From: Chrysemys picta bellii
Taxonomy: Eukaryota
DNA length: 64,000 bases
NCBI RefSeq assembly: GCF_011386835.1
Contig: NC_088802.1
Span: 3,038,001 to 3,102,000, forward strand
Direction: 5' to 3'
Part shown: one piece after another, positions 33,901 through 64,000 of the stretch
Layout: each line of letters begins with the position of its first letter
Numbering within the stretch: position 1 is the stretch's first letter
Translations under genes and position numbers: made by a program
The notes under the pieces: generated by a model
Seen by the model: only the letters and a program-made list of their open reading frames with translations
Told to the model about the DNA's origin: nothing
Database searches by the model: none

Positions 33901-36173
33901 TACCTGAACTTGAACAACGGCGAGCAGCTTTGCAGGTAAAAAGGGAAACTGAGGCGCGGACGGCTGGGGGAAGTTGAGACCTGACGAATGTCGGGTTCGC
34001 AGGGTGGCGCTCTGCAGGCGTTCGGCTCAGAAAAACCCAGCCCCGGACAACGGGGTGTGGTTGTGAACCTCCATCTGAAGCCAAATCTCTGGACCCAGCC
34101 CTGCTCAACTCCGGGCCTTACTGATAACCTGTGGAACTGCCTGCCACATTATTTCATGCATATTCGTGGCTAAATCCTTTCTTCCCCAATCCCTCCAAAC
34201 TCTTGTCCTCGTATCCTGTGGCAGCTGGCTCCATAGCCCAATAATGAAGTCTAAGTCTCTCCCTCTATCCTGGCCTCTGGTATCAAGTGGCAGGTTGATC
34301 AGGACAATATCATGGGGTGGGGAGTTCCGCAGGTTAACGGTATCCCTTCTTGAACCTAGCCACAATCTTGGCCCTCAGGATTAAGCCTCGGGACTACTTG
34401 CCACTGGTGAAATATCTCATCTTGGACGGGTGGAGGACGGGGGGTTGTTAATTCACTATCTCACCCACCCCACCCGGTCATGTGGCCTCGCTTAGCGGTT
34501 TATTTCTATTTCTTTGTTTCCCAAGATACCAGGGGCCAGTGTTGCTGGTCAGAAGAACGAAGGATGAAATTATCACCACCACGTGAGTAAAAGTCGGGGA
34601 GGGATGTGGGGGTCTAGTGGTTAGAGTGGGAGGAGACGGCGGCGGGAGCCAGGACTCCTGGGTTCCATCCCCAGCACAGGGAGGGAAGTGGGGTCTAGTG
34701 GGTTTGGGGAAGTGGATTCTGCAGTTCTAGTGTGCCATATAAAGAATTCAGAGAACCGTCAAACTCATGTCAGTGAAGAGTCTGGAAAATACCCTTAACT
34801 CTGCCCCCCTGTTGGTGTGCCTTAGGGTCCCAGAAGATATCATGTCAAACAGGGGGAATGACCTGCTGCTGAAACTCCTCCAGCACCGGTGAGTTGGGGG
34901 AGCCCAGGGCTGGGACCGCAGGGGGAGTGAGGGACACCACCGGAGCACTGCGTGTCTAACCCCCCCTCCCCCCGTTCCAGGTACCCCAAGGTGATGGCCG
35001 AGGAGGGGGCGCGAGTCGTTCGGGAATGGCTAGAAGCTTCCAGCGCCGTGGAGGAAGGTAAATGCTCTAACCACCAGCCCCCACTCCCCTCCTAGAGCTG
35101 GGGAGAGAACCCAGGCGTCCAGCCCCGCTCTAACCGGCCCCCTCCCCGCAGCCTCGGTGTACAGCTCCTATGAGGTGGACGAGGACTGGTGCCTGTCGGT
35201 GCTGAGCTCCTACCAGGCCGAGCGCGGCGGCCACTTCCCCTGGAGCGTAGGTGAGTGTGGGGCGGCAGCGAGGGCGGCCAATGGGATGCCGGGGCCGCAG
35301 CTCGGACCAATCAGCTCGGCATGGGCGGGAGGATCGCTGGGCTGAGAACCGGCCAGCGCAGGTGCTGGGGATCAGCCCGTGGGGGGGTTTCCACCCAGGG
35401 GGTGGCTGGGAGGCGAGGGGGGGTTTGGAGGGGAATCGGGCGGGGGGGTTGGTCTCTTCCTGACTTTTGACCTTTCGCCTTCCCCACAGGGGAGGACATG
35501 ACGCCCGAGGGGCGACGGCAGCTGGCCCTGTTCCTGGTGAGTGGACCCCGATAGCCCCTCCCTCCCAGCGGTGGGGGTGAGCGTGAGGCCAGGAGCCAGG
35601 ACGCCTGGGTTCTATCCCCGGCTCCGGGAGGGGAGTGGGGGTTAGTGCTTAGAGCAGGGGGGGGGGCTTGGAGCCAGGACGCCTGGGTTCTCTCCTGGCT
35701 CTGGGAAAGGAGTGGGGGTTAGTGGTTAGAGCAGAGGGGGGGCTTGGAGCCAGGATGCCTGGGTTCTCTCCTGGCTCTGGGAAGGGAGTGGGGGTTAGTG
35801 GTTAGAGCAGAGGGGGGGGGCTTGGAGCCAGGACGCCTGGGTTCTATCCCCGGCTCCGGGAGGGGAGTGGGGGTTAGTGGTTAGAGCGGGGGGGGGGGGG
35901 GGGCTTGGAGCCAGGACGCCTGGGTCCTCTTCTGGCTCTGGGAAGGGAGTGGGGGTTAGTGGTTAGAGCAGAGGGGGGGCTTGGAGCCAGGACGCCTCGG
36001 TTCTCTCCCCGGCTAGTGGCTACAGCAGGGGCTGGAGCATCCCTCCCTGCCCCCCATCACTGATTCCCTCCCTCTTCTCTGCCCTACAGGCCCGGAAGCA
36101 CCTGCGGAACTTCGAGGCAACACACTGCACCCCACTGCCCCCCCCAGCCTTCCGTTTGCCCTGGCACTTGTAG
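24928..36173 (+). CDS. ABHD16A: ABHD16A (BAT5) phosphatidylserine lipase, 549 aa, 20 exons
   Basis: Exons 24928-25050, 26588-26644, 27160-27226, 27734-27820, 28070-28155, 28649-28722, 28870-28974, 29711-29825, 30101-30202, 31066-31129, 31815-31864, 32017-32140, 32336-32440, 33872-33935, 34526-34582, 34826-34888, 34981-35057, 35152-35250, 35490-35536, 36090-36173. All GT-AG with compatible phases, 1650 nt open. MAKLLSCVLGPRLY start, nucleophile motif YAWSIGGF, end EATHCTPLPP..PWHL. Confidence 0.98.
33091..33272 (+). mobile_element. MIR/CORE-type SINE in ABHD16A intron 13
   Basis: tRNA-like head (ggtggcctagtggatagagc) and CORE-like ctgtttccctatctgtaaaatgg...cttcataaagctctttgagatc. Confidence 0.7.
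35580..36012 (+). repeat. Tandem array (~6-7 units) of the tRNA/SINE-head-like ~72-bp unit, ABHD16A intron 19
   Basis: ggagccaggacgcctgggttctctcctggctctgggaagggagtgggggttagtggttagagcag repeated in tandem. Confidence 0.92.
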
Positions 36174-37485: not shown

Positions 37486-39745
37486 ATGGGCTTGGCCGTC
37501 TGGGTCCTGCTGACCCTGCTGGCACCTGGCCCGCTGCGGGGTGAGGGGCATTGGCAAGGCTGGGGGGGGGCGGGGAGTGAGGGCCACCGGCAGAACTGGG
37601 GGAGCGGGGCTGGGCTGGCAGGGGCTGTGGGGCAGGAGTGAGGGCCACCAGCAGAGTTGGGGGGGCCAGGGCTGGGCTAGCAGGGGGCTGCGGGTCTGGA
37701 GTAAGGGGCACTGCCATCCCTCTTTTTCCCCCCCTCCCAGGTTCCCCCCCACGGCTGGAGGTGCGGGAGGCCGGGGGTCAGATCCTGCTGCTCTGTGGGG
37801 CCCAGGGCCCCCGGCTGCGCTGGGTCTGGTCCCCCCGATACCCCAAATGCGCCAGCGACCCCGGAGACCAGCTCGAAATCGCCCAGCTGCCCCCCGGGCC
37901 GGAGCCCCCCCTGGACCAGTTCAGGGGGCGCCTGGATCCCCACCCCTCCAGCCTGGGGGCCCTGCTGCTCCGGGACCTGGTCATGAGCGACTCGGGGACC
38001 TTCACGTGCCACGGGGAGTCTGGGGCCGAGCCCCCCATCCAGCTGGAGGTGACAGGAGGTGAGGCCAGACCCCCCTGCCAGCACTGGGGTCACCAGGCGC
38101 TCCCCAGCCAGGGCCCCACCCTGCTCCCCACAGCGTCCCCTGCTGACCCCCATCTGCCCCCCCAGGCTGTCGGAACAACCTCACCGTCTCCTCCAACCAG
38201 ATGTCCCCTTCAGCCCTGACCCTCCGCTGCCAGCGCTGCCCCCTGCTGGCTGGCTCGGCCCAGTTCCGCTGGTTCCTCAACTCCCAGCCCATGGGCAACC
38301 GGGGCTGGGCTACCAAGAGCCAGCTGGGGGCTACCGTGAGGCTGGACCCGTCCCGGCGCGGGGCCTGGGGGCGCTGGGAATGTCACCTCCATGGCACCTC
38401 CTCTGGGGGCTTTGAGTTCTGCCTGGAGCCCCCCCTCGAGGCAGGAGGCGCAGGTAAGATAGTGCCGCACATCCTGCACCCCCCCACACCTGCCCCACGG
38501 TGCCCCCTGCTGGCCCTGACCCTACCTCTGTTCCAGGCCCCAGCTCTGAGTGTTGGATGTGGGTCACGGCACCAATGGCGGTTCTGGGTCTGATCGGCGC
38601 AGGGCTGGGCGCTTGGCACCTGTGGAGACGGAGACGGGGCAGGTGAGTTGGGGACCCGGAGTCCGGGGAGCGGCACCCCCAGCAGGGGATGGAGAGGGAA
38701 GAGAGAGAGAGGGACCCAGGAGTCCGGGGAGCAGAGCCCCAGCCCAGGGTGGAGTGGAAGAGGGAGAGACCCAGGAGCTTGGGGAGTGGTAGCCCCACAG
38801 GGTGGGAGAAGGGACCCAGGAGTCCAGGGATGGGGAGAAACCTGTTTTCATCATGTATCTTTGCCGTTTTCTTCCTTCAGTAACCAACGGAATCAAAACA
38901 GACGAGAGAACGAAACAGGTGAGAGAGAGAAATAAAAACAACCCCCAGCCGCAGGCCTGTTACCCTGGTATCCCACCGTTCCCACCACAGGTCAGAGCCA
39001 TGGGGCCCAGCTACCCCGGTATCCCACCGCTCCCACCATAGGTCAGAGCCATGGGCCCAGCTACCCTGGTATCCCGCCTCCCCAGCTGAGTGCAGAGTGG
39101 ATCCAAGATTTCCTGCCTGAGTAACCAGGTCCGTAACCTTCCCAGCCATGTTCAGTCTGTAAAAATCCACTGGTGGGTAGTTCCACAGGTCAACCGGCTC
39201 CTTGGTTACATTTTCCCCCACACACACACTATCCCATCCCTGCTTTCCTCTTGATTTTCTCCTTCTCTCCATCCTGTGCCAAGGAGCCCCTGGGCCCCGT
39301 TTATCCCCCTTGGAAGAGCTGCAGCTTGGAGCCAAATCGACCGAAAAACATCTTGTGCCCCAGGGTTGGGAAAGAAAAGTGAGAGAGTGAGGGGCACCAG
39401 CAGAGCTGGGGGGAGCCCAGGGCTGGGCGAGCAGGGGCTGTGGGTCAGGAGTGAGGGGCACCGGCAGAGCTGGGGGGCAGGGGGTAGCAAGGGGAAATCT
39501 TTGTAACTTATTGCCCCTTCTCTCCCCAGGTCCCAGGCCCCCTGCTTTATGCTGAAGTCCAGCACCCACTGGTGGCTCGAGCCCCAGCCCCTCCCCCCAC
39601 ACGGCACCACGGTCTATGCCACTATTGTCTGATGCCCCGGTTCCGCTTCCCCCTCCTGTCCACCCCCTTCATGAGTTGCATTAACACCCTGGCTCCCATC
39701 CCAGGTGATGGGAAATTCAGCTGGAAGATGCAAGAAATCTGTTAG
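37486..39745 (+). CDS. Gene A: G6b-like inhibitory receptor (signal, IgV, IgC2, TM, ITIM); last exon frameshifted relative to gene B
   Basis: Exons 37486-37540, 37741-38058, 38166-38453, 38537-38642, 38881-38918, 39284-39378 and 39530-onward. V motifs RWVWSPRYPKC, FRGRL, DSGTFTC; ITIM LLYAEV. One extra C in a poly-C run (~39592-39598) moves TVYATIV-stop (39630-39632) out of frame and the stop to 39743-39745. Confidence 0.85.
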
Positions 39746-40508
39746 AATCTTGTGGTGGGGAGTTCCACAGGTTAACGGATTGTGGCATTAAAATCTGCCC
39801 TTGAAACCCTCGTGTTTGTGATGTGTCACCTTTGTCCTCAAGACCCCACCCTTTGGGCCTGGCTCTGGGGGGTGGGGTTCAGGCAGACGCGGCGCCACTT
39901 CATTTCCTGCCCCAAACGTCTGTGAAGAGCCACCCAGCTGCCCTGCCCCGGAGTTAGCTGCATCTCAGCACTGGCCAAGGGCTCCCTGTATAACCAGCCC
40001 CCGGCGCCCCACTCCAGAGGTGGCTGCATCTCCGCTCCTGGCGAGGGACAGCTGAGAATGAGGAGAATTCACGCTGAGCCACCCGCCTCCATGGGTGGGA
40101 TTTGAACCCGCGACCCCCAGCTTTGCGCCCTGCCGGTTAAGTTATCCTACGCCTGCAGCACCAGGACCAACCACTAGGTGGGGAAAAAACTACGCAAGTG
40201 GGTAAAGCCAGGAGCTAATCGGGTGTTGGGGGCTGGGAGCCAGGACACCTGGGTTCTAACCCCAGCTCGGAGAGGGACGTGGGGCCCAGGGGCTCGAGCA
40301 GGGGGGATGGGAGCCAGGACTCCTGGGTTCTATTTGCAGCAGGGGGCGGCTACTGCCCAGGAGCCCGTGTGATATCCTGTGCTTTGCTAGCAGCAGCTTC
40401 CTCTTCGCTGTAGCCCTGTGAGCAACGCCCCTGCCCAGAGGCAGACGCACCCTGCCCCCGGAACCCCCTCTCCCTGCCCCACGGCTCCCACCCCTCCCCG
40501 GCTCCACC

Positions 40509-41253
40509 ATGTGCCCCCCTCTCCTGCCTCTGGCCCTCGCCCTCCTCACAGCGGTGCCCCCGGGCGCTCAACAAGGTAAGGAGCCGACCGGGCCGTGAGG
40601 CTGGGAACTCGCACTCGGTGGGTGGGGGCTCGGACGGGGCAGCGGGGGGCTCAGCAGGGGGTGCTCTCCCCTGGTCCCAGTGCGCTCAATAAGGAACCCA
40701 ACTCCCAGGGTCCCAGGAGAATCCCAGAGCCAGTGAGCCCATTCCTGTCGCCCTACAAATCTTCCCCCTGCGGCTCCAGCTGGATGCACCCTTCCCCTTC
40801 ACTTCCTGTCTCAAACTTGTGTTCATCTGTTACCCACCCCAGAGGTGGCTGCATCTCCGTGCCAGGCGAGGGGTCCCCGTCACTCTTGTCCCCTCGTAGG
40901 CAGGAACCACTCGGCTCTGGAGTTTGCAGGCCCAGAGGTGACGGCAGAAGCCGGCTCGACTGTGAGTCTGTCCTGCAGCCGGCCAAGACTGACCTGGCAG
41001 TGGATCCCACGGTACTCAGTCTGTGCTGGTGTCAGCGGTGGGATACAGACGATCTACACGGTGACAGTGGCTGGGGCCAGGTACAGCCTGTGGGAGAGAT
41101 TTAACAGGCGGCTGCGTCTCCTACTGGATCAGGGAACCTGAACCTTCATCCTCCAACTGAGAACCCTCCACATGAACGACTCAGGGGCTCTCTTCTGTCC
41201 CTGCCCCAGCCCCAGCCAGAACGCCACGCCGATCTCCGTGACCATCACGCCCG
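40509..41253 (+). pseudogene. C1: truncated G6b-like gene (leader and V exon only)
   Basis: Leader 40509-40575 (MCPPLLPLALALLTAVPPGAQQ). V exon 40930-41253 has an in-frame TGA at 41139-41141. It is followed directly by the duplication junction, so no C2 or TM exons. Confidence 0.88.
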
Positions 41254-41406
41254 GTAACAGCACTGCCGGGGGGCTGGGAACCAGGACAACTGGGTTCTCT
41301 CCCTGTCTCGGGGAAGGGACTGAGGGGGTCTAGTGGCTACAGCAGGGGCTGGAGCGTCTCTCCCTGCCCCCCATCACTGATTCCCTCCCTCTTCTCTGCC
41401 CCCCAA

Positions 41407-43879: not shown

Positions 43880-46142
43880 ATGGGCTCGGCCGTCTGGGTC
43901 CTGCTGGCCCTGCTGGCGCCCGGCCCGCTGTGGGGTGAGGGGCACTGGCAGAGCTCGGGGGGGTGGGGCTGGGCTGGCAGGGGCTGCGGGTCGGGAGTGA
44001 GGGGCACCGGCAGAGCTGGGGGCAGGGGGGGACTAGTGAGGCTGCGGGTCAGGAGTGAGGGGCACTGGCAGAGCTGGGGGCGGGGCAGGGCTGGGCTACC
44101 AGGGGCTACGGGTCGGGAGTGAGGGGCACAGCTAACACTCTCCCCCTCCCAGGTTCCCCCCCATGGCTGGAGGTGCGGGGGGCCAGGGGTCAGATCCTGC
44201 TGCCCTGTGGGGCCCGGGGTCCCCGGCTGCGCTGGGTCTGGTCCCCCCGATACCCCAAATGTGCCGGTGACCCCGGAGACCAGCTCGAAATCGCCCGTCT
44301 GCCCCCTGGGCCGGAGCCCCCCCTGGACCAGTTCAGGGGGCGCCTGGATCCCCACCCCTCCAGCCTGGGGGCCCTGCTGCTCCGGGACCTGGTCATGAGC
44401 GACTCGGGGACCTTCACGTGCCACGGGGAGTCTGGGGCCGAACCCCCCATCCAGCTGGAGGTGACAGGAGGTGAGGCCAGACCCCCCTGCCAGCACTGGG
44501 GTCACCAGGCGCTCCCCAGCCAGGGCCCCACCCTGCTCCCCACAGCGTCCCCTGCTGACCCCCCATCTGCCCCCCCAGGCTGTCGGAACAACCTCACCGT
44601 CTCCTCCAACCGGACGTCCCCCTCAGCCCTGACCCTCCGCTGCCAGCGCTGCCCCCTGCTGGCTGGCTCGGCCTCCTTCCGCTGGTTCCTCAACTCCCAG
44701 CCCCTGGGCAACCCAGGCTGGGCTACCAAGAGCCAGCTGGGGGCTACCGTGAGGCTGGACCCGTCCCGGCGCGGGGCCTGGGGGCGCTGGGAATGTCACC
44801 TCATTGGCACCTCCTCTCGGGGCTTTGAGTTCTGCCTGGAGCCCCCCCTCGGGGCAGGGGGAGCAGGTAAGATAGTGCTGCATGTCCTGCACCCCCCCAC
44901 ACCTGCCCCACGGTGTCCTCTGCTGGCCCTGACCCTACCTCTGTTCCAGGCCCCAGCTCTGAGTGGGGGATCTGGGTTGTGGCGGCGGTTCTGGGTCTGA
45001 TCGGCGCAGGGCTGGGCGCTTGGCATCTCTGGAGGTGGAGACGGATATGGGGCAGGTGAGTTGGGGACCCGGAGTCCGGGGAGCGGCACCCCCAGCAGGG
45101 GATGGAGAGGGAAGAGAGAGAGGGGGACCCAGGAGTCCAGGGAGCAGAGCCCCAGCCCAGGGTGGAGTGGAAGAGGGAGAGACCCAGGAGCCTGGGGAGT
45201 GGTAGCCCCACAGGGTGGGAGAAGGGACCCAGGAGTCCGGGGATGGGAGTGGGGAGAAACGTGTTTTCATCGTGTATCTTTCCCATTTTCTTCCTTCAGG
45301 AACCGACGGAATCAAAACAGAAAAGAGAACAAAACAGGTGAGAGAGAGAAATAAAAACAACCCCCAGCCGCAGGCCCGTTACCCCCGTATCCCACTGCTC
45401 CCACCATAGGTCAGAGACATGGACCCAGGTATCCCACCGCTCCCACCATAGGTCCGAGCCCTGGGCCCAGCTATCCCGGTATCCCGCCTCCCCAGCTGAA
45501 TGCAGAGCGGATCAAAGATCTCCTTCCTGAGTAGCCGGGTCCATAACCTTCCCAGCCATGTTCAGTCTGTAAGAATCCAGTGGTGGGTAGTTCCAGAGGT
45601 CAACCGGCTCCTTGGTTAGATTTCCCCCCCCCCCCCCGCACTATCCCATCCTTCTTCCCTCTTGATTTTCTCCTTCTCTCCATCCTGTGCCAAGGAGCCC
45701 CGGGGCACCGTTTATGCCCCTTGGAAGAGCCATGGCTTGGAGCCAAATCGACCGAAAGACGCCTTGTGCCCCAGAGTCGGGAAAGAAAAGTGAGCGGGGG
45801 CAGGGCTGGGCTGGCAGGGGCTGTGGGTCAGGAGTGAGGGGCACCGGCAGAGCTGGGCAGCGGGAGGCATGGCTGGGCTGGCAGGGGCTGTGGGTTGGGA
45901 GTGAGGGGCACCAGCAGAGCTGGGGGGGCAGGGCGGGGCAAGCAGTGGCTGTGGGGCGGGAGTGAGGGGCACCAGCAGAGCTGGGGGGCAGAAGGTCGCA
46001 GGGGGAAATCTCTGTAACTTCTTACCCCTTCTCTCCCCAGGTCCCAGGCACCCTGCTTTATGCTGAAGTCCAGCACCCACTGGTGGCTCGAGCCCCAGCT
46101 CCTCCCCCACACGGTGCCACGGTCTATGCCACTATTGTCTGA
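43880..46142 (+). CDS. MPIG6B: Gene B: intact G6b-like inhibitory receptor, 333 aa (signal, IgV, IgC2, TM, ITIM LLYAEV, C-terminal ITSM TVYATIV)
   Basis: Exons 43880-43934, 44153-44470, 44579-44866, 44950-45055, 45300-45337, 45695-45789 and 46041-46142; phases 1,1,1,2,1,0; 1002 nt open. RWVWSPRYPKC, FRGRL, DSGTFTCHG, LLYAEV and TVYATIV parallel recalled human G6b-B (RWVWAPSFPAC, FVGRL, DSGTFFCKG, LLYADL, TIYAVV). The symbol is a family-level assignment; one-to-one orthology is unproven. Confidence 0.88.
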
Positions 46143-46997
46143 CCCCCCACCCGCCCTGGCTCCGCTCCCCTCTCCTCTCCACCCCCTTCATGAGTTGCAT
46201 TCACACCCCTGGCTCCCAGGTGATGGGAAATTCAGCTGGAAGATGCTGGAAATCTCTGTTAAAATCCTGTGGTGGGGAGTTCCGCAGGTTAACAGATTGT
46301 GGCATTAAAATCTGCCTTTGAACCCCTCGTGTCTGTGGTGTGTCTCCTTTGTCCTCAAGACCCCACCCTTTGGGCCTGGCCCCGGGGGGTGGGGTTCAGG
46401 CAGACTCAGCTCCCCTTCAGTTCCTGCCCCAAACGTCTGTGCAGAGCTGCCCCGCCCCAGAGTGAACTGCACTGGCCAAGGGATCCCTGTATAACCAGCC
46501 CCCCTCGCCCCGCCCCAGAGGCGGCTACATCTCCACTCCAGCTGAGGGACATCTGACCATGAGGAGAGTTCAGGCCGAGCGCACCCACCTCCGTGGGCAG
46601 GATTTGAACCTGCGACCCCCAGCTTTGCACCCTGCCTGTTAACAATTATCCTGTAGCACCAGGACAAACCACTAGGTGGGGAAAACTGAGCAAGTGGGTA
46701 AAGCCAGGAGCTAATCGGGTGTTGGGAGCCAGGACACCCGGGTTCTAACCCCAGCTCGGAGACGGACGTGGGGCCCAGGGGCTCAAGCAGGGGGGATGGG
46801 AGCCAGGACTCCTGGGTTCTATTCGCAGCAGAGGGCGGCTACTGAACAAGAGGCCGTGTGATATCCTGTGCTTTGCTGGCAGCAGCTTCCTCTTCGCTGT
46901 AGCCCTGTGAACAACGCCCCTGCCCAGAGGCAGACGCACCCTGTGCCCGGAGACCCCTCTCCCTGCCCCAGGGATCCCACCCCTCCCCGGCTCCACC

Positions 46998-48847
46998 ATG
47001 CGCCCCCCTCTCCTGCCTCTGGCCCTCGCCCTCCTCACAGCGGTGCCCCCGGAGGCTCAACAAGGTAAGGAGCCGACCGTGCCGTGGGGCTGGGAACTCG
47101 CACTCGGTGGGTGGGGGCTCGGCCGGGGCAGCGGGGGGCTCAGCGGGGGGCACTCTCCCCTGGCCCCAGTGCGCTCAATAAGGAACCCAGGAAAATCCCA
47201 GAGCCGGTGAGCCCATTCCTGTCACCCTAAAAATCTCCCCTTGCGGCTTCAGCTGGATGCACCCTTCCCCTTCACTTCCTGTCCCAAACTTGTGTTCCGC
47301 TGTTACCCACCCCAGAGGTGGCTGCATCTCCGTGCCAGGCGAGGGGTCCCCGTCACTCTTGTCCCCTTGTAGGCAGGAACCACTTGGCTCTGGAGTTTGC
47401 AGGCCCAGAGGTGACGAAAGAAGCCGGCTCGACTGTGAGTCTGTCCTGCAACCTGACGGGGCCGAGGCTGAGCTGGCGGTGGGTCCCGCGCTACACAGTC
47501 TGCGCTGGTGTGAGCGGTGGGATAAAGACAATTTAAACAGTGACGGCGGCTGGGGCACACGACACTCCGGAGGGGAGGTTTAAGAAGCGGCTGCATCTCC
47601 TAACCAGTCGGAGAACCCAAACCTCCGTCCTCCAACTGCAACCCCTCCACATGAACGACTCGGGGGTCTTCTTCTGTGTCAGCCCCAGCCAGAACGCCCC
47701 GCCGATCTCCATGACCATCACGCCCAGTAACAGCACTGCCGGGGGGCTGGGAGCCAGAACACCTGGGTTCTCTCCCCAGCTCTGGGAGGGGAGTGGGGGC
47801 TAGTGGTTAGAGCAGGGATCTGGGAGCCAGGACACCTGGGTTCTCTCCTAGCTCTGGAAGGAGGGGAGCAGCAAGCAGCCAGCAGGGGGCGGGTCGTTAA
47901 CTGGATCCATCACGTTTGGCTCTGCCCCCACAGGCTGCCCGGCCAGGGTGTCCATCGCCACGGTCCCCAAGGAGCCGGTCGTGGAGGGAGCGTCTGTGTC
48001 CCTCTCCTGTACCCACTGTGGGGAGCAGGGACCCACATCACCCCCAGCAGGAGGCCCCACGTGGCAGCTCAATGGGGAAACGCTACCAAACTCCACAGCC
48101 CCTCGGATCCTGAGGTCCAACGTGACGATAGAGGGTTTCTCCAGCTCGTTGGAAGGTCTGTGGAGCTGCCACCTGCCTGGGGATCCCCTCCAGTCTGGGA
48201 GCTACTGCCTGGAGCGCGAGCCGGGGGCGCACGGGACCCAGCAGAGCACCAGCCCCACCCCCACCAGTCCAGGTGCATATTCAGCCCCCGTATCCCTGTC
48301 ACAGTCAATGCAGCCACCTCTGGGGCGGGGCAGCTGGGTACCAGCCGCACAGAACAGCGACACCCCAGGGTTGGGGTGGGGAGCGAAGGGGGAGCCTGGA
48401 TGCGATGGGGGGAGGTCGGCTGGGAACCCTGAGTTTGGCTTAGACCTGGGCGCTGGAGTCCACAGCATACCTGTGGGGGAAAACGTACCAAGGGGTTCCT
48501 GTGCTGGCAGCCCCGTGTCCCACCCCAGAGGTGGCTGCATCTCAGCGCCGGGCGAGTGGTCCCTGTATAATCAGCCCCGTGTCCCGCCCCAGAGGTGGCT
48601 GCATCTCAGCGCCCGGCGAGTGGTCCCTGTATAAACAGCCCCGTGTCCCACCCCAGAGGTGACTGCATCTCAGCTCCGGGTTTGTGGCCGCTCCAAGCTA
48701 CTGTCTCCGGTCGCAGGCTCCGGGATGACGGTGCTGGCTGTGCGCTGTGGCCTCGCCTTCCTCTTCTTCAGTGTCACCCTCGGGGCCGTCGGCTACGTGC
48801 ACTGGAAAACCCGGGCCCGGGCGGCCAGCAGGTACTCGCCCCTTTAA
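46998..48847 (+). pseudogene. C2: activating-type G6b-like gene with a nonsense codon in the V exon
   Basis: Exons 46998-47064, 47403-47726 (TAA at 47534-47536 where paralogues have TAC), 47934-48272 and 48717-onward (TM MTVLAVRCGLAFLFFSVTLGAVGYVHW). The expected final acceptor near 49030 is replaced by Gypsy sequence. Confidence 0.85.
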
Positions 48848-51850: not shown

Positions 51851-54800
51851 TCAGCCGTGGCCGGTGGCCAGTTCAGAGTAGATGGTGGCCGGGCCAGTTT
51901 CTGCCCTGACCCCGGCCCCACGGGGTGCCTGGAAGTGCAGGGTGGAGTATTGGATCCCCTCCGGGCCCTGCAGAGATCGGGGCAGGACAGAGTGGGCGTT
52001 AGGGTGGCATTACCGCCTGGGGGCACTGCCAGGGGAGAGTCCCCTTCTGCCCCCTGCCCACTCCCCACAGCCCAGCGCCCCCTGCTGCCCCCGTCCTGCT
52101 CCCCACAGCCCAGCGCCCCCTGCTGCCCCCGTCCTGCTCCCCGCAGCCCGGCGCCCCCTGCTGCCCGCATCCCCACAGCCCAGCATCCCCTGCTGCCCCC
52201 GTCCCGCTCCTCACAGCCAGGGCTGGATTAACCTTTCGTGGGCCTGGCGCCAAACATATTTCCGGGCCCCCAGGCAGGCAGTGGAGCCTGGCACAGGGAG
52301 GTCAGTCCCCGGAGTGAGGGGCAATGGGGCATGGAAGGGGCAGCCCCGCTCTGCCCAATGCGAGGGCGCTGGTTACAAACCCGTGCCCAACCCTGTGCTG
52401 CCAGCGTGACCCTTCCCCTCGGGGGGGGCACCATGCCACACCACACAGCCCCCCCACCCCAACACCCCCCAACTTCCTATGGCCAGAGCCCCCCCAGTCC
52501 CCTCCACACAAATGCCCAGCGCCCTGCACAACACCCCCCTGCCCACAGCCCCACAACTGCCCAGCACCCCCCACAGAACCCCCACTCCCTAGCGCCCAAC
52601 ACACAGAGATCTTCCCCGCCCCCTCACAGCCCAGGACCCTCCCCCCCGCAGGAAACCCCTTCCCCTAAGCCCTGCTGGGAGGTGACTGTGTCTGCCGGGC
52701 TGAGCCGGGAGCGCAGCCAGGGCTGGTCCCGGGGCCGGGAATCGCTCCAGCCCCTCGGCAGTGCTGAGCTCAGCCAGGCCAGGGCCTGCCCCGGACGGAG
52801 TCCCTCAAGATGCCCAGCCAAGCTCCCCGCACTGTCCCCTTCCTCCCCCCGCCCCCGGCTGAGACCGGCCAGGCTGCTGCCCCACTCCCAGGCGGCTCAG
52901 CTCCAGGGGGACAGGGGGGGCCCACAGGTGGTGGGAAGCAGAGACGGCCCGGAGCCGGAGGTGCACTGGGGTCCGGCCAGGGGACCGAGAGGAGCAGGGG
53001 GTGGGGCCGAGGGGAGTAAATGGTGGGCGGGGGGAGCCAGACGGGTCTTGGGGAACAGGGCAAGCGGAGCAGCCCAGGGCCCCTTCTGAGCATGGGCCCG
53101 GCTCCATGGCGCCCTTGGAGCTGTTGTAAACCCAGCACTGCCCCCGGCCCTGCCCCCCGCTGCTGCCCCCCGCCCCCCACGGCCCAGCACCCCCTGCTAC
53201 TCCCCCGCTGCCTCCAGCCCCGCCCCCTGCAGCCCAGCCCCCCTTGCTGCCCACAGCCCAGTGCCCCCTGCTGCCCCGTCCCGCTCCCTACGGCCCAGTG
53301 CCCCCTGCTGCCCCGTCCCGCTCCCCACAGCCCAGTGCCCCCTGCTGCCCCCGTCCCGCTCCCTACGGCCCAGTGCCCCCTGCTGCCCCTGCCCCACCCC
53401 CCATGGCCCAGCACCCCCTGCTGCCCCCCGCCCCGGTCCCCTCAGCCCAACGCCCCCTGCTGCCCCGCCCCCCACAGCCCAGTGCCCCCTGCTGCCCCCC
53501 GCCCCGTCCCCACAGCCCAGCGCCCCCTGCTGCCCCCGGCCCTGCCCCCTGCAGCCCAGCCCCCCCTGCTGCTCCCGCCCCCAGCCCCACAGCCCAGTGC
53601 CCCCTGCTGCCCCCGCCCCGAGTGCCAGGGGCGTTACCTCGCCAGCAGGCAGGGGGTCAGCCAACGGGGGCTTCTGCTCGGCTCCGCCAGCCTCCATGGG
53701 GCCGGGCTGCTCAGCTGGGAAGGGGGAGAGACAGCGACGGGTTACAGATGCCAGCCGTGTGGCCCCCCAGCCCGGCCCCCCTGCCCCGGCCCCAGCCCCT
53801 GGCCCCAGAGCTCACCCCATTGCTCCCACTTTCCGTCCATCTTCGTCGCCGGGAGGGTCGCGCTGGGGATACACAGGGACAATTAGACCATTTCCCATGG
53901 CAGAGAAACCCCTGGGCTAGGCCCGGCCCCTATGGAATAACCCCCTATAGCGGCCGGCCGGCCTCACCCCATCCTGTACTCCCCTCATACAATACCCTGC
54001 CCTATAGACTCCAGGCTGGACCCACTGCCTCGGGCACATTTCAGGGCACAGCTCCTATAGACTAATCCTCCCTCTGCCCCTTAGCCCATCATCCCTATAG
54101 GACTGGCCCTATAGCACAACCAGTCTATACCACCTGTCTGTCTGTGCCTCCGCCTATACCCCTCCCCTATAGAATATCTCCCCACTGGCCCCATAGACTA
54201 TTGCCTTTATAGCTCCACCAACCCTATAGAAGACCTCCCTTATATCCCCACTGACCCTATAGGCTCTCACCTATATGTACCTTGTACCTGCCCCATAGAA
54301 TAAATCCCTTCTATAGCCCATATACCTATTCCCTATTGTGACGTTTATAGAAATATTTACCCCTGTAGCCTCATTAGCTCTTATGGGACCCCCCCAATTC
54401 CCTCCCCATCCTGTTCCCACCCCCCCAATTCCCTCCCCATCCTGTTCCCACCCCCCCATGGAATGTCCCCCTATAGCCGCCCCATTCCACCGCCGCCCCC
54501 TATGGACTGACTCTGCCTACATCCCTGCCCCCTAACACCGCCCCACACCCCACTGCTCCCCCCCGTACCTGGCATCCCTCAGCCGGCGCCTCCTGCAGCA
54601 AATTACAGCAACGGCGCCCACGAGGACCAGGGCCAGAGCAGCCCCCGCGCAGCCCCCGACCAGAGGCAGGAGGGCGCCTGGGGTGCCGGTGTCTGGGGGG
54701 AAAAATGGGGGCTAGGATCACTCACCCGGCGCTGAGATGCGACTGCCTCTGGGGTGGGGCGCGGGGGCTGTTCATAGAGGGATCCCTCATCCGGCGCTGT

Positions 54801-57394
54801 GATGCAGCACCTCTGGGGTGGGGCACGGGGGCTGTTCATAAAGGGATCCCTCGCCCGGCGCTGAGATGCGTCTGCCTCTGGGGTGGGGCGCGGGGGCTGG
54901 TTATACAGGGATCTCTCGTCCGGCCCTGAGAGGCGGCTGTCTCTGGGGTGGGGGGCGGGGGCTGGTTATACAGGGATCCCTCGTCCGGCGCTGAGAGGCG
55001 GCTGTCTCTGGGGTGGGGCGCGGGAGCTGGTTATACAGGGATCCCTCGTCTGGCGCTGAGATGCGGCACCTCTTGGTGGGAGCTGGGGAACAGCCGCAGA
55101 GAACACCTGCGTCCAGTGCCCTTCAGTGCCCCTTTTCCACCCCTCTCGGCCGGTCGCCTGCAGCCCCAGCTGAGCTGGACTCGGGCGGAGAAGCGAGGGG
55201 GGCGCAGGGCAGGGGGAGATCCACACACCTGGACTGGTGGGGATGGGGCCGGGTGGGGGGCTCTCCTGGGTCCCGTGCCCCCCCGGGTCACGCTCCAGGC
55301 AGTAGTCCCCAGACCGGGGGGGATCCCCAGGCAGGCGGCAGCTCCACAGACCTTCCAACGAGCTGGAGAAACCCTCTATCGTCACCTTGGACCTCAGGAT
55401 CCGAAGGGCTGTGGAGTCTGGTGGCGGCTTCCCATTAAGTAGCCACGTGGGGCCCCCTGCTGGGGGTGACGTGGGTCCCTGCGCCCCACAGGGGGTACAG
55501 GAGAGGGACACAGACGCTCCCTCCCCGACCGGCTCCTTGGGGACCGCGGCGATGGACGCCCCGGCCGGGCAGCCTGTGGGGGCAGAGCCAAACGTGATGG
55601 AGCCACTGAAAGGGCACCCCCTGCTGGCGGCTTCCCCCCCCCCCACCCGGCTGGGCTAGAACCCATCAAAATCCTAAACCACTCCCCACAGCTGGGGAGA
55701 GAACCCAGGCGTCCTGGCTCCCAGCCCCCCCCCTGCTCTAACCACTAGACCCCACTCCCCTGCTAGAGCCAGAAGAGAACCCAAGAGTCCTGGCTCCCAG
55801 CCCCAGTAGAGCTGTTACCGGGCGTGATGGTCACGGAGATCGGCGTGGCGTTCTGCCTGGGGCTGGCACAGAAGAAGACCCCCGAGTCGTTCATGTGGAG
55901 GGTTTGAAGTTCGAAAACGGAGGTTTGGGTTCCCTGATCCGTTAGGAGATGCAGCCACTTCATAAATCTCTCCAGCAGGCTGTTCCCTGCCCCACCCGCC
56001 ATCGCTGTGTAGATCGTCTGTATCCCACTGCTGACACCAGCGCAGACCGGGTAGCGCGGGATCCACCGCCAGCTCAGGCTCGGCCCCGTCAGGTTGCAGG
56101 GAAGTTTCACAGTCGAGCCGGCTTCTGCCGTCACCACTGGACCTGCAAACACCAGAGCGGATGGGTCCTGCCCGACTGGAGAGCCAGGGTCCCCTTACCC
56201 GGCGCTGAGATGCAGCCACCTCTGGGGTGGGGCCCGTATACAGGGATCCCCCGTGACCGTAGAGAACCCCTCCTTGCTAACGAGCAAAGGGGTCGCTGTT
56301 CGGCACCGGTAACCCCTGACAAAGCCCCCGCACGCAGCCCCTGGCCCTGGCAGTATTTCTCCACAGCGGGTTGGGTGAGGCCTCTCATAACGGCTCCCGG
56401 CTGCGGCCCTGCGTCTGAGCGCCGAACGGGGGCTGGGTCCCAGGCCGCGACGACGGACGAGCTTTGCCCGCCTGGCTCCAGACTCCTGGTCAGCCCCTGG
56501 AGGGCAAAGCCAGCTCAGTGCCGGGGGGCGGAGGGGCCAAACCAGAGTCAAGCCGGGATCTGGGGCCTGTTGCTTTGCAGTGTGGACGCAGTTCCGTGGA
56601 CTCGTGAGGCAGGGGAGACTTACAGTCGCCTTTCCCCGCCCCCACTCTCCCCGGGGACCGCACCGGGGACCCGGGCGGCTGGGCTGAGGCCCATGTACCA
56701 GAGCCAGGGTCAGGGTTACAGATGAGTGTGGACGCCCCAGCCCTTGGCTGGCTAGCTCCGGCCAGACCTGGAGTCTGAGGCCCCGCTTCACACCCGGGGT
56801 TGAGCCCACCCCGGTGTAACCGCTCCGAGACGGGTCACTCTTGGGGGTCAGAGGCAGATGTGGGCCTGGGGGGGGCCGCGATGGGCTGCGGAGCCGAACC
56901 AAAGGAACTCGGGGTTCGCTGGGCCCTTGGGGGCAGTGAGCCGGGGATGTTTGGGGAGCCAGTGACCCAGGTGGGAGGTCGCCTTGCGCTCTTCCCCCCC
57001 CAACCCCTCTGCAAGCCAGGCCAGGACTGGCCGTGCGCCGGGGAGGTGGCCGACCAGCCGGCGGTGTCAGGGAATTAGCACTGGCAAGTCTGGGGGACCC
57101 TGAGAAACCTCCCGCAGGGCTGAGATGCAGCCACCTCTGGGGTGGGGCAGCTGGTTATACAGGGATCCCTTTCCTGGGGCTGAGATGCAGCCACCTCTGG
57201 GGCAGGGCGGCTCGTTATACAGGGACCCCTAGGCACTGGGACAAGCCCTGAGCCTCCCGCCCCATTCGCTGCAGGCCTCCAGGCCGAGCCCAGCCCCGGC
57301 CCCACCACGGCCCCGTTTGCTCCTTACCTGCCTGAGCCCCTGGGGGCACTGCTGCCAGGAGGGCGAGGGCCAGGGGCAGGAGCTGGGGGTGCAT
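51851..57394 (-). CDS. C3: intact inhibitory receptor with C-type ectodomain, 366 aa (signal, IgV, IgC2, uncharged TM, ITIM IQYSTL, ITSM-like TIYSEL)
   Basis: Exons 57394-57328, 56142-55819, 55573-55229, 54692-54569, 53862-53816, 53714-53638 and 51967-51851; phases 1,1,1,2,1,0; 1101 nt open. TM ALLPLVGGCAGAALALVLVGAVAVICC-RRRR. Minus-strand AATAAA at 51514-51519. Confidence 0.85.
53150..53625. repeat. GC-rich minisatellite (cccctgctgcccccgtcccgctccccacagcccagcgc family)
   Basis: Tandem units in C3 intron 6; also at 52060-52210. Confidence 0.9.
54720..55075. repeat. ~62-bp minisatellite (ggcgctgagatgcagccacctctggggtggggc..ttatacagggatccctc)
   Basis: About 6 units. Same family at 23330-23450, 27500-27660, 39950-40030, 48490-48680, 57110-57230, 61070-61170 and 62000-62120. 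Confidence 0.9.
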
Positions 57395-59042: not shown

Positions 59043-60510
59043 GCTGCCCGGCCGGGGCGTCCATCGCCGCGGGTCCCAAGGAGCCAGTCGAGGAGGGAGT
59101 GTCTGTGTCCCTCTCCTGCACCCCCTGTGGGCCGCAGGGAACCACCTCATCCCCAGCAGGGGGCGCCACGTGGCAGCTCAATGGGGAAATGCTACCAAAC
59201 TCCACAGCCCCTCGGATCCTGAGGTCCAACACGGTGACGATAGAGGGTTTTTCCAGCCGTCTGGAGGGTCTGTGGAGCTGCCGCCTGCCTGGGGATCCCC
59301 CCTGGTCTGGGGGCTACTGCCTGGAGCACGATCTGGTGTGACAGTGCTGCCCGTGGGAGCCAGCTGAGGTCACTCAATCAGGGTGAACTGCAAACAGACC
59401 GGGGCAGAGAAATCCCAAATGCTGGTGGATCTTCCAATACTTAGATTTCCCAAACAGCCCAAAACAGCTTCTACAGTACCTCCCTGGTTACTCAGACGTC
59501 CAAACAACGCAGTTCCCTTAAAGTGCCCAGCCTCAGGCTCCGTCCAGACACACGTCAGATACGATGATGGTTACTGAAAATCTGATCTCATCAGATACAA
59601 GAAAAGGTTCTTCCAACCCCCAAAGGATCAGCCACACACCCAGGTCCAATGATAACTTAGATCTTACCCAAAATACACGTTATAGCCAATTCTTATTAAC
59701 TAAGCTAAAATTAATTAGAAAAGAAAAGAGAGAGAGTGTTGGTTAAAAGATCAATATACAGACAGACTTGAATTCAATTCTTGAGGTTCAGACACAGCAG
59801 AGATGAGCTTGTAGTAGCCAAAAGTCCTTTTAGAAATAGTCCAGAGGTTATAGTCCAATGTCCATGTTCAGGGCGGCTCCAGTCAGTGACTGGGGATCTC
59901 AATCCTTGTGGCTCAGGGTTTCCCCTCTTGAAACCCAAAGCAGATCTGAGATGAAGCAGGATCATGTCCCAGGGTTTTTATACATTTCCATCAGCCGCTC
60001 AGCCTGAGAAAACACTAGGCTCAACTTTCCTTCTTCCCAACATCCTGGCAATTAGCACAGGGTAATTTATCCATTAAGCAGTTCAGATCCAGGTTACCAC
60101 AACCTTCAAAGAGACATAGAGACAATAATACTACTTCACTCAAGTATTATCATAAATGTCAATCTTCCTTTTTGATCTTTGAATTAAAGATGCCACAGGG
60201 GAGGTCGGCTGGGAACCCTGAGTTTGGATTAGACCTGGGCGCTAGAGTCCACAACATACCTGTGGGGGAAAACGTACCAAGGAGTCCCTGTGCTGGTAGC
60301 CCCGTGTCCCGCCCCAGAGGTGGCTGCATCTCAGCTCCGGGTTCGTGGCCGCCCAAGCTTCTGTCTCCAGTCACAGGCTCCGCGCCCGGCAGCGGCTGGG
60401 GGGTGACGGTGCTGGCTGCGCGCTGTTCCTCAGCGCCACCCTCAGAGCCGTCGGCTACCTGCACTGGAAAACCCGGGCCCGGCAGGCCAGCAGGTACCCG
60501 CCCCTTTAAC
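59043..60510 (+). pseudogene. C4: activating-type G6b-like remnant (C2 exon and TM exon only)
   Basis: C2 exon from 59043 is cut at 59337 by an antisense LTR. The TM exon from 60377 has an out-of-frame deletion right after ...GCG CGC TGT. No leader or V exon upstream. Confidence 0.85.
59337..60190 (-). mobile_element. Truncated LTR, same family as 42317 and 49315, antisense
   Basis: tgtgacagtgctgcccgtgggagcc is the reverse complement of the LTR 3' end. Homology stops near 60190, where C-gene intron 3 sequence resumes. Confidence 0.9.
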
Positions 60511-60869
60511 ACCAGTGCCCCCTGCGGGGCTCCCCCTGCCCTGCTCCCTGGGGCAATGGGGCCAGCCCCGACTGCCAGGGGAGAGTCCCCTGCTGCCTCC
60601 CCCCGCTCCCTGCAACCCAGTGCCCCCTGCGGGGCTCCCCCTGCCCTGTTTCCTGAGGCACACAGCCAGCACTGACTGCCTGGGCACAGCCCCCCCTACC
60701 CCCCCCCAGTGCCGGAGCGAAAGGGTTACCTGCTGCCCGAGCTCTGTGGGTTTCCTGATTTCTTCACAACCTCCTTCCCCTTCCCCTCAGGGGCTGGGAG
60801 CAAGGCCCCTCCCCAGAGACAGATGCCCCCAGAGGCCCTTCTCACCGGATCACCTCCACCAGCTCCACC

Positions 60870-63688
60870 ATGCGCCCCCAGCTCCTGCCCCTGGCCCTCG
60901 CCCTCCTGGCAGCAGTGCCCCCGAGGGCTCAGGCAGGTAAGGAGCAAACCCAGCCGTGGGCCTGGCCTCTCGCCAAGTGAGGCTGGGGATGGGCTCGGCC
61001 GGGAGGCCTGCAGCAAACAGGGCGGGAGGCTCAGGGCTTGTCCCAGTGCCTGGGGGTCCCTGTCTAACCAGCCGCCCCGCCCCAGAGGTGGCTGCATCTC
61101 TGCACCGGGGGAGGGCTCCCTGTATAACCAGCTGCCTCACCCCAGAGGTGGCTGCATCTCAGCCCCAGGGGAGGTTTCTCAGGGTCCCCCAGACTTGCCA
61201 GTGCTAATTCCCCTGACACCGCCGGCTGGTTGGCCACCTCCCCAGGGCACGGCCAGGCCTGGCCTGGCTTGGAGAGGGGCTGGGGGCTCGGGGGAGGGAG
61301 TGGAGGGCAGCCTGACCCACCGGGCGTAACATGTCTCGGAGCGGCTGAGCCGGGATGGGTTCACACTCGGGCGTGAAGCGGGGCCCACACTCTGGGCAGG
61401 ACCGCGCTGCAGCGGAAGCCGGGGGCTACATTCGCCCGGGGCTGGGGTGTCCACACTGGTTTGTAACCCCCACCCAGACTCCGGTGTCTCAACGATGTCT
61501 GGCCACCCGTGTCCCAGACACCCCGGCCGCACCTGCCAGGGGGGTGGGAAGGCGACTGGCGCCCCTCCCTCCCCCGCCCACGCGTGTCACTAGCCCGGTG
61601 GGGCTGCGTCCACACTGCAAAGCAACGTGCCCCGGATCCTGGCTTGACTCTGGCCACTCTGTCCCCAGGACTCTGGTGTCGGGCGATTCGGGTGTAGCCG
61701 GAGCCTCGGTGGCACAGTCAGGGCTGCTGCACGCTGGGCCCAGCACAAGACAGCCCGAGCGATGGGAGCCGGCTCCTGGGGGCCGTGTGCCGTGATGCCC
61801 GTGGGCGGCTTGTCCTGCCTGCAGCCTGGCGCGCTCCTCAGGGACAGACGCAGGGCCAAAGCCGGGAACTGTTGTTAGCTGCCTCGTCCAGCCCACTGCG
61901 GATAAATACTGCCAAGGCCAGGGGCTGCGTGCGGGGGCTTTGTCAGGGGTTATGGGTATCGAACGGCGACCCCTTTGCTCGTTAGCAAGGAGGGGCTTAG
62001 GGTCACAGGGGGATCCCTGTATGAATGTGCCCCATCCCAGAGCTAGCTGCATCTCAACACAGAGCAAGGGGATCCCTATATAATCAGCCACCCCTCCCCA
62101 GAAGTGGCTGCATCTCAGTGCCGGGTAAGGGGTCCCCGTCTCTCCAGTGCTCTGTTGGGCAGGACCCATCAGGCTCTGGTGTTTGCAGGCCCAGAGGTGA
62201 CGGCAGAAGCCGGGTCGACTGTGAAACTTCCCTGCAACCTGACGGGGCCGAGGCTGAGCTGGCAGTGGATCCCGCGCTACCCGGTCTGCGCTGGTGTCAG
62301 CGGTGGGATACAGACGATCTACACAGTGATGGCAGCTGGGGCACACAGCACTCCGGAGGGGAGATTTCAGAAGCGGCTGCGTCACCTAATGGCTCAGGGA
62401 AACCGAACCTCCGTCCTCGAAGTCCAAACCCTCCACATGAGCGACTCGGGGACCTTCTTCTGTGCCAGCCCCAGTCAGAACGCCTCGCCGATCTCCGTGA
62501 CCATCATGCCCGGTAACAACCCTGCCCGGGGGCTGGGAGCCAGGACTCCTGGTTCTCTCCCCGGCTCTGGAAGAGGTTCATTTTGATGGGGGGCTATAGC
62601 CCAGCGCGAGGGGAAGCGGAAAGCAGCCAGCAGGGGGCGGGTTGTTAACTGGATCCATCACTTTTGGCTCTGCCCCCACAGGCTGCCTGGCCGGGGCGTC
62701 CATCAAAGGGGTCCCCAAGGAGCTGGTCATGGAGGGAGCGTCTGTGACCCTTTTCTGTACCCCCTGTGGGGCGCAGGGACCCACGTCACCCCCAGCAGAG
62801 GGCACCACGTGGCAGCTCAATGGGAAGCTGATATCGAACTCTCCAGCCCTTCGGATCCTGAGGGCCAACAAAATGACGATAGAGAATTTCTCCAGCCGGT
62901 TCGAGGGTCTGTGGAGCTGCCGCCTGCCTGGGCATCCCCCCCGGTCTGGGGACTACTGCCTGGAGCGCGACCAGAGTGGGCACAGGACCCAGCAGAGCAC
63001 CAGCCCCACCAGTCCAAGTTTGTATTCAGCCCCCGTGTCCCTGTCAGTCAATGCGGCCACCTCTGGGGTGGGGAAGCTGGATACCAGCCTCACAGAATGG
63101 CGACACCCCAGGGTTGGGGTGGGGAGCGAAGGGGGAACCTGGATGCGATGGGGGGAGGTCGGCTGGGAACCCTGAGTTTGGATTAGACCTGGGCGCTGGC
63201 GTCCATAACATACCTGTGGGGGAAAACGTACCACGGGGTCCCTGTGCTGGCAGCCCCGTGTCCCGCCCCAGAGGTGGCTGCATCTCAGCTCCGGGTTTGT
63301 GGCTGTTACAAACTTCTTTCTCACGTCGCAGGCTCCCCGCCCGACAGCGGCTGGGGGGTGACGGTGCTGGCCGTGCGCTGTGGCCTCGCCTTCCTCTTCC
63401 TCAGCGCCAGCCTCGGGACCATCTACTATGTGCACTGGAAAACCCGGGCCCGGCCGCCCAGCAGGTACCCGCCCCTTTAACGCCAGCGCCCCCTGGGGGC
63501 TCCCCCTGCCCTGCTCCCTGGGGCAATGGGGCAGCCCCGACTGCCAGGGGACAGCGCCCCCTGCTGCCCCCGCCTGCACAGCACCCCCTAGCGCCACCTT
63601 GTGGGTCAGCTACCACATTTCTCTGCTGTGTGGCTCACACAATGTCTCTCTCCCTCCTTTCCTGTCTTGCAGGCGCCAGCGGGACTGA
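60870..63688 (+). CDS. C5: intact activating-type G6b-like receptor, ~291 aa (signal, IgV, IgC2, Arg-containing TM, short tail)
   Basis: Exons 60870-60936, 62189-62512, 62682-63017, 63332-63464 and 63673-63688 (tail ...RPPSRRQRD-stop), or read-through to TAA at 63478-63480 (...RPPSRYPPL). TM VTVLAVRCGLAFLFLSASLGTIYYVHW. The exon 3 donor is weak (CAA|gtttgt). Confidence 0.82.
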
Positions 63689-64000
63689 GGCCTTCGCTTC
63701 CCCGGCACCGCGTCCACACTGCACTCACCCCCCATCCCCTTCCACTCGCCTGAGAAGCCAGAAACTCCCTTCTGGGCCCCCATCCAGTCTGGTCACCGGC
63801 CATGTATTTACTGCACATAATGTAGGACCTACGTTATTATTCCCCCCGACTGGAGTATAGAATGACCGGTTCCCGCGCTCAGGGTCCCCGCTGGGAACGG
63901 CCCCAGCCCCTGCTGTTGCCTGGGGACGGTGAACGTTGTATGTGCAACCCGCATACACTTTGTGTACAGCTTGGCTTGTTTACAATACATATGGTAGGCC

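Follow-up and report, generated by a model that had tools for sequence, protein, structure and literature searches.

The stretch analysed here, 64,000 nucleotides of the genome of the turtle Chrysemys picta bellii (NCBI RefSeq assembly GCF_011386835.1, contig NC_088802.1, positions 3,038,001 to 3,102,000 of the forward strand; hereafter the window, with positions counted from its first letter), contains a cluster of genes and gene fragments related to the receptor G6b. We focus on two of them: C5, which codes for an arginine in its transmembrane (TM) segment, and C3, its inhibitory-type twin on the opposite strand (Table 1). C5 is an intact gene of five exons with GT..AG boundaries at all introns, and its open frame of 291 codons specifies a 291-amino-acid product collinear with that of LOC119567550 of Chelonia mydas, which is likewise 291 amino acids long. 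The exon coding for its V-type immunoglobulin (IgV) domain recovers the Pfam family G6B (PF15096) with 43 bits, above the gathering threshold of 24.3, and the closest match of this domain in the PDB is human G6b (6r0x; E 1.6e-10). The TM exon reads ...GWGVTVLAVRCGLAFLFLSASLGTIYYVHWKTRARPPSR and translates as SPPDSGWGVTVLAVRCGLAFLFLSASLGTIYYVHWKTRARPPS(R), the final arginine codon being split so that two of its bases lie in this exon; the 16-base last exon then ends the gene. The resulting cytoplasmic tail, HWKTRARPPSRRQRD, is basic, comprises 15 residues with no tyrosine among them, and contains neither an immunoreceptor tyrosine-based inhibitory motif (ITIM) nor an immunoreceptor tyrosine-based switch motif (ITSM). 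The predicted product is a G6b-family membrane glycoprotein of type I, in which a signal peptide, an IgV domain of the G6b type and another Ig domain (Ig2) are followed by a Ser/Pro-rich stalk, one TM helix and a short tail.

Between the ectodomains of C5 and the neighbouring C3, identity is 75% in the IgV and 78% in the Ig2 domain. C3 has an uncharged TM segment (LLPLVGGCAGAALALVLVGAVAVICC), and its last exon carries the motifs IQYSTL (51938-51955) and TIYSEL, an ITIM and an ITSM-like motif. Judged by arrangement and motifs, C5 and C3 have the classic layout of paired receptors, an activating-type gene beside an inhibitory one.

Table 1. Coordinates of C5, its twin and the other genes and gene fragments of the window
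Feature	Position	Strand	Details
C5 exon 1, with start codon, GT donor and signal peptide (MRPQLLPLALALLAAVPPRAQA)	60870..60936	+	RNA contigs X1 and X3 at 60807-60937
C5 exon 2, G6b-type IgV domain	62189..62512	+	Pfam and PDB matches; spliced RNA joint 62512/62682
C5 exon 3, second Ig domain and Ser/Pro/Thr-rich stalk	62682..63017	+	Weak Ig_2/Ig_3 matches; collinear with turtle orthologues; RNA contig
C5 exon 4, TM exon bearing the arginine	63332..63464	+	AG acceptor, GT donor, phase 1; RNA contigs 63339-63451 and 63342-63446
CGC codon of the TM arginine, residue 7 of the 25-residue hydrophobic stretch	63376..63378	+
C5 exon 5, 16 bases, (R)RQRD and TGA stop (63686-63688)	63673..63688	+	Spliced joint 63464/63673
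C3, inhibitory twin	51851..57394	-	Signal peptide at 57394; IgV 56140-55820; Ig2 55574-55263; TM exon 54684-54595; stop 51851-51853
C2, copy with arginine TM	46998..48832	+	TM exon 48725-48832; TAA in IgV at 47534-47536
C4, 5'-truncated copy (Ig2 exon and TM exon)	59045..60494	+	TM exon 60385-60494, with 16-bp deletion and frameshift
C1, signal-peptide and IgV exons only	40509..41252	+	Stop in IgV; pseudogene fragment
B2, intact G6b-B-like inhibitory gene	43880..46142	+	Two Ig domains; uncharged TM 44964-45032; tail LLYAEV...TVYATIV-stop
B1, duplicate of B2	37486..39632	+	Two Ig domains; uncharged TM; 1-bp insertion between ITIM and ITSM
ABHD16A, 3' part; conserved neighbour of the cluster	30650..35771	+	85% DNA identity to Natator L001:18-5314

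Transcription of C5 was assessed with Logan contigs from four runs (four studies, two organism labels), which we compared with positions 60700-63950. Three spliced joints were recovered, 62512/62682, about 63017/63332 and 63464/63673, the second of them inside a single 390-nt contig that covers the Ig2 and TM exons; further contigs span the signal-peptide, IgV and TM exons and the 3' untranslated region (UTR), which extends to at least 63908. The run type is guessed as RNA in the records ("RNA?"); despite this, intron-less joints at canonical sites show that a processed C5 transcript exists. Since GT..AG joins are found in the contigs on both sides of the TM exon, and since the exon is conserved in annotated turtle proteins, it is not a chance open reading frame (ORF).

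The hydrophobic stretch encoded by this exon runs V-T-V-L-A-V-R-C-G-L-A-F-L-F-L-S-A-S-L-G-T-I-Y-Y-V, with the arginine seventh. The best-scoring hydropathy windows of 19-21 residues hold the arginine at position 4-7 in C5, C2 and the orthologues, and windows starting past it are clearly poorer (6.4 vs 2.4, Hessa sum, on approximate scale values). We also ran AlphaFold2 on the Chelonia orthologue of C5 with a 16-sequence alignment and obtained a model with two confident Ig domains and one helix at 253-281, of which Arg258 is the sixth residue. The basic residue is thus predicted to lie inside the TM helix, in its outer third. Five or six hydrophobic residues precede the arginine in most orthologues, as in C5.

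The preliminary description of this locus, made from the letters alone, had reported arginine-bearing TM peptides in C5 and C2, followed by a basic KTRAR and an early stop. Both peptides are present in the respective TM exons, the stop codon of C5 falls 8 residues past KTRAR, and hydropathy and the structural model agree in putting the arginine within the helix. As a second example of such a receptor, C2 holds up in part: its TM exon does read MTVLAVRCGLAFLFFSVTLGAVGYVHWKTRARAASR, but the gene is broken, with an in-frame TAA in the IgV exon where C5 has TAC and a last exon that is not alignable, and it is probably a pseudogene. C5 is the sole intact arginine-type gene within the window.

An alignment of the TM segments of ten turtle sequences (Chelonia, Natator, Lepidochelys, Eretmochelys, Caretta, Mauremys, Chelonoidis, Pelodiscus and the C5 and C2 of the window) has only three invariant columns: the arginine, one glycine and one histidine. 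At the DNA level the arginine is encoded by CGC, a CpG-containing and hence hypermutable codon, in 6/6 copies (C5, C2 and C4 of the window, that of Natator and two of Pelodiscus), and this codon is retained over the deepest cryptodiran split. The Pelodiscus segment, ALALRCSLVGLFLAASVGALCYAHRQ, has a short tail after it; across the arginine-type orthologues the tails have 15-20 residues, and the residue at -3 from the arginine is leucine or glycine. When the TM and tail region was used as a database query, matches came from turtles only, and no outside relative of the TM exon was found. Intact arginine-type genes are annotated in at least six further turtle species, and the database labels of the turtle genes read "uncharacterized" or "G6b-like". 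One entry from Caretta caretta, XP_048674226 (P0014), bears the label "basic proline-rich protein-like"; its Ig exons are read out of frame and the arginine TM exon stands in frame at its end, and it is evidently a misannotated orthologue of the arginine-type gene.

Gene order is conserved as well. In both Natator (the flatback; locus L001) and Pelodiscus (the softshell; locus L002), ABHD16A is followed by a G6b-B-type gene, an arginine-type gene on the plus strand and an ITIM-type gene on the minus strand. The arginine TM exon and the pair of arginine-type and ITIM-type genes adjoining ABHD16A are therefore conserved across cryptodiran turtles. The softshell locus contains two near-identical arginine TM exons (L002:8660-8818 and L002:11915-12034), and its annotation includes a 412-amino-acid "G6b isoform X1" and a chimeric 390-amino-acid model (P0007), which suggest a local duplication or misjoined gene models.

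To place these genes, we computed a maximum-likelihood tree from the IgV and Ig2 domains (33 rows, 206 columns). The ectodomains of the turtle C-type genes form a single clade (support 100/99), outside which come, in order, sequences of alligator, squamates, axolotl and coelacanth, nearly all of these rows being ITIM forms; the G6b-B-like genes group apart, in a clade of their own (100/100). The tree thus places C5 in an old two-Ig lineage that spans turtles, alligator, squamates, axolotl and coelacanth and is distinct from the lineage of B1 and B2. The earlier label of "G6b paralogue" accordingly needs refining: the IgV domain is that of the G6B family, but the gene stands apart from the G6b-B-like genes. 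The coelacanth Latimeria chalumnae has a pair of its own, in which LOC106703915 (P0023), with a lysine in the TM segment and a 20-amino-acid tail, is sister to the ITIM/ITSM-bearing LOC102353469 (P0024). This pair is independent of that of turtles, a second such pair from the family. At the alligator locus there is a single ITIM-type gene, and the arginine TM exon was not found within 10 kb on either side, which suggests that the arginine type may be turtle-specific, in a comparison that covered the alligator and these flanks.

Within the turtle clade the arginine and ITIM types are intermixed, the arginine-type gene of Mauremys, for instance, grouping with the ITIM gene of Pangshura (99/97). 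The twins of Natator (L001:10410-11401 and L001:17057-16173) are 94% identical in IgV and 91% in Ig2 and only about 70-79% identical to the genes of the window, a similarity that points to gene conversion or concerted evolution between twins. Because the TM exon is common to all these turtles while the ectodomains do not sort by type, the simplest reading would be that the duplication is old and that gene conversion has since acted on the ectodomains repeatedly. C5 also looks like a recombinant between twins, its 5' part resembling C3 and its 3' part C2 and C4. Promoter region, signal-peptide exon and long intron 1 (60700-62100) match C3 (57571-56187, minus strand) and not C2, with 95.5% identity to C3 and 83.6% to C2 in the signal-peptide exon; the TM exon and 3' UTR of C5 are like those of C2 and C4.

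Taken together, these observations make it rather probable, in our estimate, that C5 is the activating half of a paired receptor system of which C3 is the inhibitory half. The hallmarks of an adaptor-dependent activating receptor are all found in the C5 sequence and its context: a basic residue in the TM segment, a tyrosine-free tail of 15 amino acids, an ITIM-bearing twin, conservation and transcription. As a general rule, a TM arginine or lysine pairs with an aspartate of an adaptor (PMC5371597, PMC2413239). By analogy, the buried arginine of C5 would pair with the TM aspartate of a disulphide-linked dimer of an adaptor bearing an ITAM (immunoreceptor tyrosine-based activation motif). Ligand binding by C5 would then lead to Src/Syk signalling, and C3, on the same or a similar ligand, would recruit SHP phosphatases. 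Since the residue is an arginine and sits in the outer third of the helix, FcR-gamma or CD3-zeta would be the favoured adaptors, with DAP12 as a further candidate; NKp30 and NKp46 use arginine for CD3-zeta/FcR-gamma, and NKp44 uses lysine for DAP12 (PMC5371597). The architecture, conservation and expression expected of an activating twin are well supported, and its function is a prediction.

Several observations weigh against this assignment. The guessed run type of the contigs, noted above, is one. Another is that the arginine, 19 residues from the inner H-W-K boundary, is near the outer edge of the bilayer core and could snorkel to the interface. In addition, an annotated isoform of the Mauremys reevesii gene (LOC120392490 isoform X2; P0004) skips the arginine TM exon, and its last exon is translated in a different frame, for a predicted secreted product. 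Pairwise ratios of nonsynonymous to synonymous substitution rates (dN/dS) are about 1 or higher in the Ig exons and in the TM exon. To these are added the decay of neighbouring copies and the lack of a motif typical of FcR-gamma partners, both taken up below. Snorkelling, exon skipping and a TM-exon dN/dS not below 1 would all fit a decoy, that is, a C5 that competes with its twin for ligand, either as a tail-less membrane form or secreted through skipping of the TM exon, with its arginine at the interface and no adaptor. We regard such a decoy as unlikely. The hydrophobic flank before the arginine is kept in most orthologues and AlphaFold2 puts the arginine within the helix; a decoy needs no arginine, yet the hypermutable CGC codon persists across the deepest cryptodiran split; and the skipped joint 63017/63673, which would give a TM-less C5, was not seen among the RNA contigs, from which rare forms may be missing.

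The substitution rates call for a closer reading. In the Ig exons, pairwise dN/dS is about 0.9-2, with the exception of the Natator IgV pair (0.51), a pattern that fits the fast evolution of immune receptors and fits relaxed constraint too, and is no proof of selection. On the short TM exon, dN/dS revealed no purifying selection, and the case for conservation therefore rests on the invariant arginine with its CGC codon and on the 16/17 identical core, not on omega.

Three of the four C-type or arginine-type copies beside C5 in the window are pseudogenes (C1, C2 and C4, the last of which lacks signal-peptide and IgV exons). Set beside the recombinant look of C5 and its pairwise dN/dS of about 1-2, this raises the alternative that C5 is a recent recombinant, decaying or functionless, in a birth-and-death cluster, and its arginine TM segment a relic. 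The intact 291-codon frame with canonical splice sites, the spliced transcripts, and the intact arginine-type genes of at least six other turtle species in conserved synteny make this explanation very improbable.

The preliminary description had likened the TM segment of C5 to those of GPVI, LILRA, FcalphaRI and NKp46 and had proposed a GPVI-like activating receptor on thrombocytes that couples to FcR-gamma. GPVI, LILRA2, PIR-A, NKp46, OSCAR and FcalphaRI share one homologous TM subtype with an NxxR motif, a DYT motif and an acidic inner end, which mediates association with FcR-gamma; FcR-gamma also binds many divergent TM segments besides this subtype (PMC2413239, PMC6557307). C5 has the arginine in the outer third of the TM segment and the short tail, and its V-R-C recalls the V-R-I-C of GPVI. 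In mammals, the G6b-B of megakaryocytes and platelets counteracts GPVI (PMC6742478; reference 13 in PMC3528668), and a collagen receptor of fish thrombocytes is G6f-like, an ITAM receptor linked to the major histocompatibility complex (MHC) (PMC3528668). NxxR, which marks the best-characterised FcR-gamma partners, is absent from C5 (V-L-A-V-R, with leucine at -3), as are DYT and the acidic inner end, C5 having SPPDSGWG as its N-terminal flank and V-H-W-K at the inner end. The GPVI segment aligns with that of C5 at a score of 19, which 42% of shuffles reach and which is chance level, and the C5 lineage differs from that of the G6b-B-like B1 and B2. We therefore rejected a GPVI-like TM segment for C5 on the absence of NxxR and the chance-level alignment, and the broader proposal of a GPVI-like, FcR-gamma-coupled receptor on thrombocytes seems to us improbable. 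What stands of the earlier claim is the putative activating receptor with its hallmarks; the specific indication of FcR-gamma falls away with NxxR. On the sequence alone, FcR-gamma is a candidate that is not singled out, CD3-zeta and DAP12 being equally eligible.

Other TM segments align better. That of NKp46 is above chance at a score of 36, and the best alignment is with human NKp30, arginine on arginine, with a score of 47 that was reached in 0/2000 shuffles and with two gaps; we treat these alignments as leads and not as tests, and an NKp30-like TM segment as a lead only. The TM segment of B2 also aligns with that of C5 above chance (score 45) and has valine at the position of the arginine. 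In a profile comparison, the C5-type TM exon gave a probability of 34% (P 4e-4) against the G6b-B-type TM and of 3.6% (P 0.012) against that of its twin (C3-type), a slight lean towards a G6b-B-type origin in which both results are weak. Compared with the PDB by Foldseek, the AlphaFold2 model gave generic two-Ig matches (antibody fragments, LAG3 D1-D2), which were uninformative.

A search of full-text papers found no activating counterpart, arginine-TM member or paired receptor of G6b, and nothing relevant on the G6b of turtles or other reptiles. Mammalian G6b-B is an inhibitory receptor essential to the platelet lineage. The present locus shows a G6b family that was broader in vertebrates other than mammals, with an old two-Ig lineage whose ITIM forms extend from coelacanth to reptiles, and to which turtles add a conserved, arginine-anchored, tail-less twin. 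C5 would be a clean example of an arginine-TM activating module invented outside the conserved NxxR type. If it does couple to an ITAM adaptor, the turtle pair would offer a natural system for asking which ligand, be it heparan sulfate or a mimic made by a pathogen, exerts the pressure behind paired evolution at this locus, and how the nucleated thrombocytes and leukocytes of reptiles balance ITAM against ITIM signals without the mammalian receptor set. A bolder conjecture, which we hold to be quite doubtful, is that the G6b locus in the MHC class III region of turtles keeps an ITAM-adaptor-coupled activating twin that is expressed in thrombocytes, opposes G6b-type inhibition and has a TM exon sharing ancestry with that of NKp30; if this were so, the G6b checkpoint of the platelet lineage would have been ancestrally paired, and mammals would have kept only the inhibitory half.

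The remainder of the window provides the setting of the pair. A tandem duplication of about 6.4 kb (37486-41352 and 43880-47868) holds in each copy a G6b-B-like gene together with a C-type gene's 5' part (B1/C1 and B2/C2). The insertion in B1 lies in a C-run at about 39580 and may be a homopolymer error. The called gene at Natator L001:18-5314, to which the 3' part of ABHD16A is similar, holds ABHD16_N and Abhydrolase_1 domains. A Pfam scan of the ten longest ORFs located within 1-31 kb of the window gave zero matches. A unit about 75 bp long is repeated in tandem arrays and also found singly in introns (21340-22330, 35590-36015, 62528-62576 and many others) and is very abundant in the RNA contigs, and a second, GC-rich minisatellite of about 56-60 bp is found at 5630-5990, 10740-11480 and 16815-17185.

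Among known systems, one close to C5 by family and place is G6b-B (MPIG6B), with which it shares an IgV domain of the Pfam family G6B and a locus adjoining ABHD16A in MHC class III-type synteny. C5 differs from it by the second Ig domain, the TM arginine and the absent ITIM and ITSM; the G6b-B-like tail (LLYAEV...TVYATIV) belongs instead to B1 and B2, in a clade separate from that of C5. With the NxxR receptors, namely, GPVI, LILRA2, PIR-A, NKp46, OSCAR and FcalphaRI, C5 has in common the arginine in the outer part of the TM segment, the short tail and the presumed need for an ITAM adaptor, but its Ig domains are of a different family and its locus is another, so that it would be a functional analogue of this group at most and not a member. 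NKp30 (NCR3) is, like C5, an IgV receptor of the MHC class III region with a TM arginine (PMC5371597), a resemblance that is a lead only. The G6f-like receptor of teleosts is another nonmammalian activating Ig receptor, in the same MHC class III neighbourhood, and has been proposed as a substitute for GPVI (PMC3528668); it differs in carrying its own cytoplasmic ITAM, does without coupling through a TM charge, and belongs to the G6f and not the G6b family. As a system, the turtle pair recalls the KIR2DL/KIR2DS, Siglec-11/16 and CEACAM pairs, classical paired receptors that gene conversion has homogenised and which likewise comprise adjacent inhibitory and activating twins with similar ectodomains within a species (91-94% in Natator), divergence between species, and rapid birth-and-death evolution that leaves pseudogenes. 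It differs from these in Ig family and locus, and in that its activating TM exon, closer in the weak profile comparison to the B-type TM than to the C3-type, does not look like the twin's TM exon with a point mutation.

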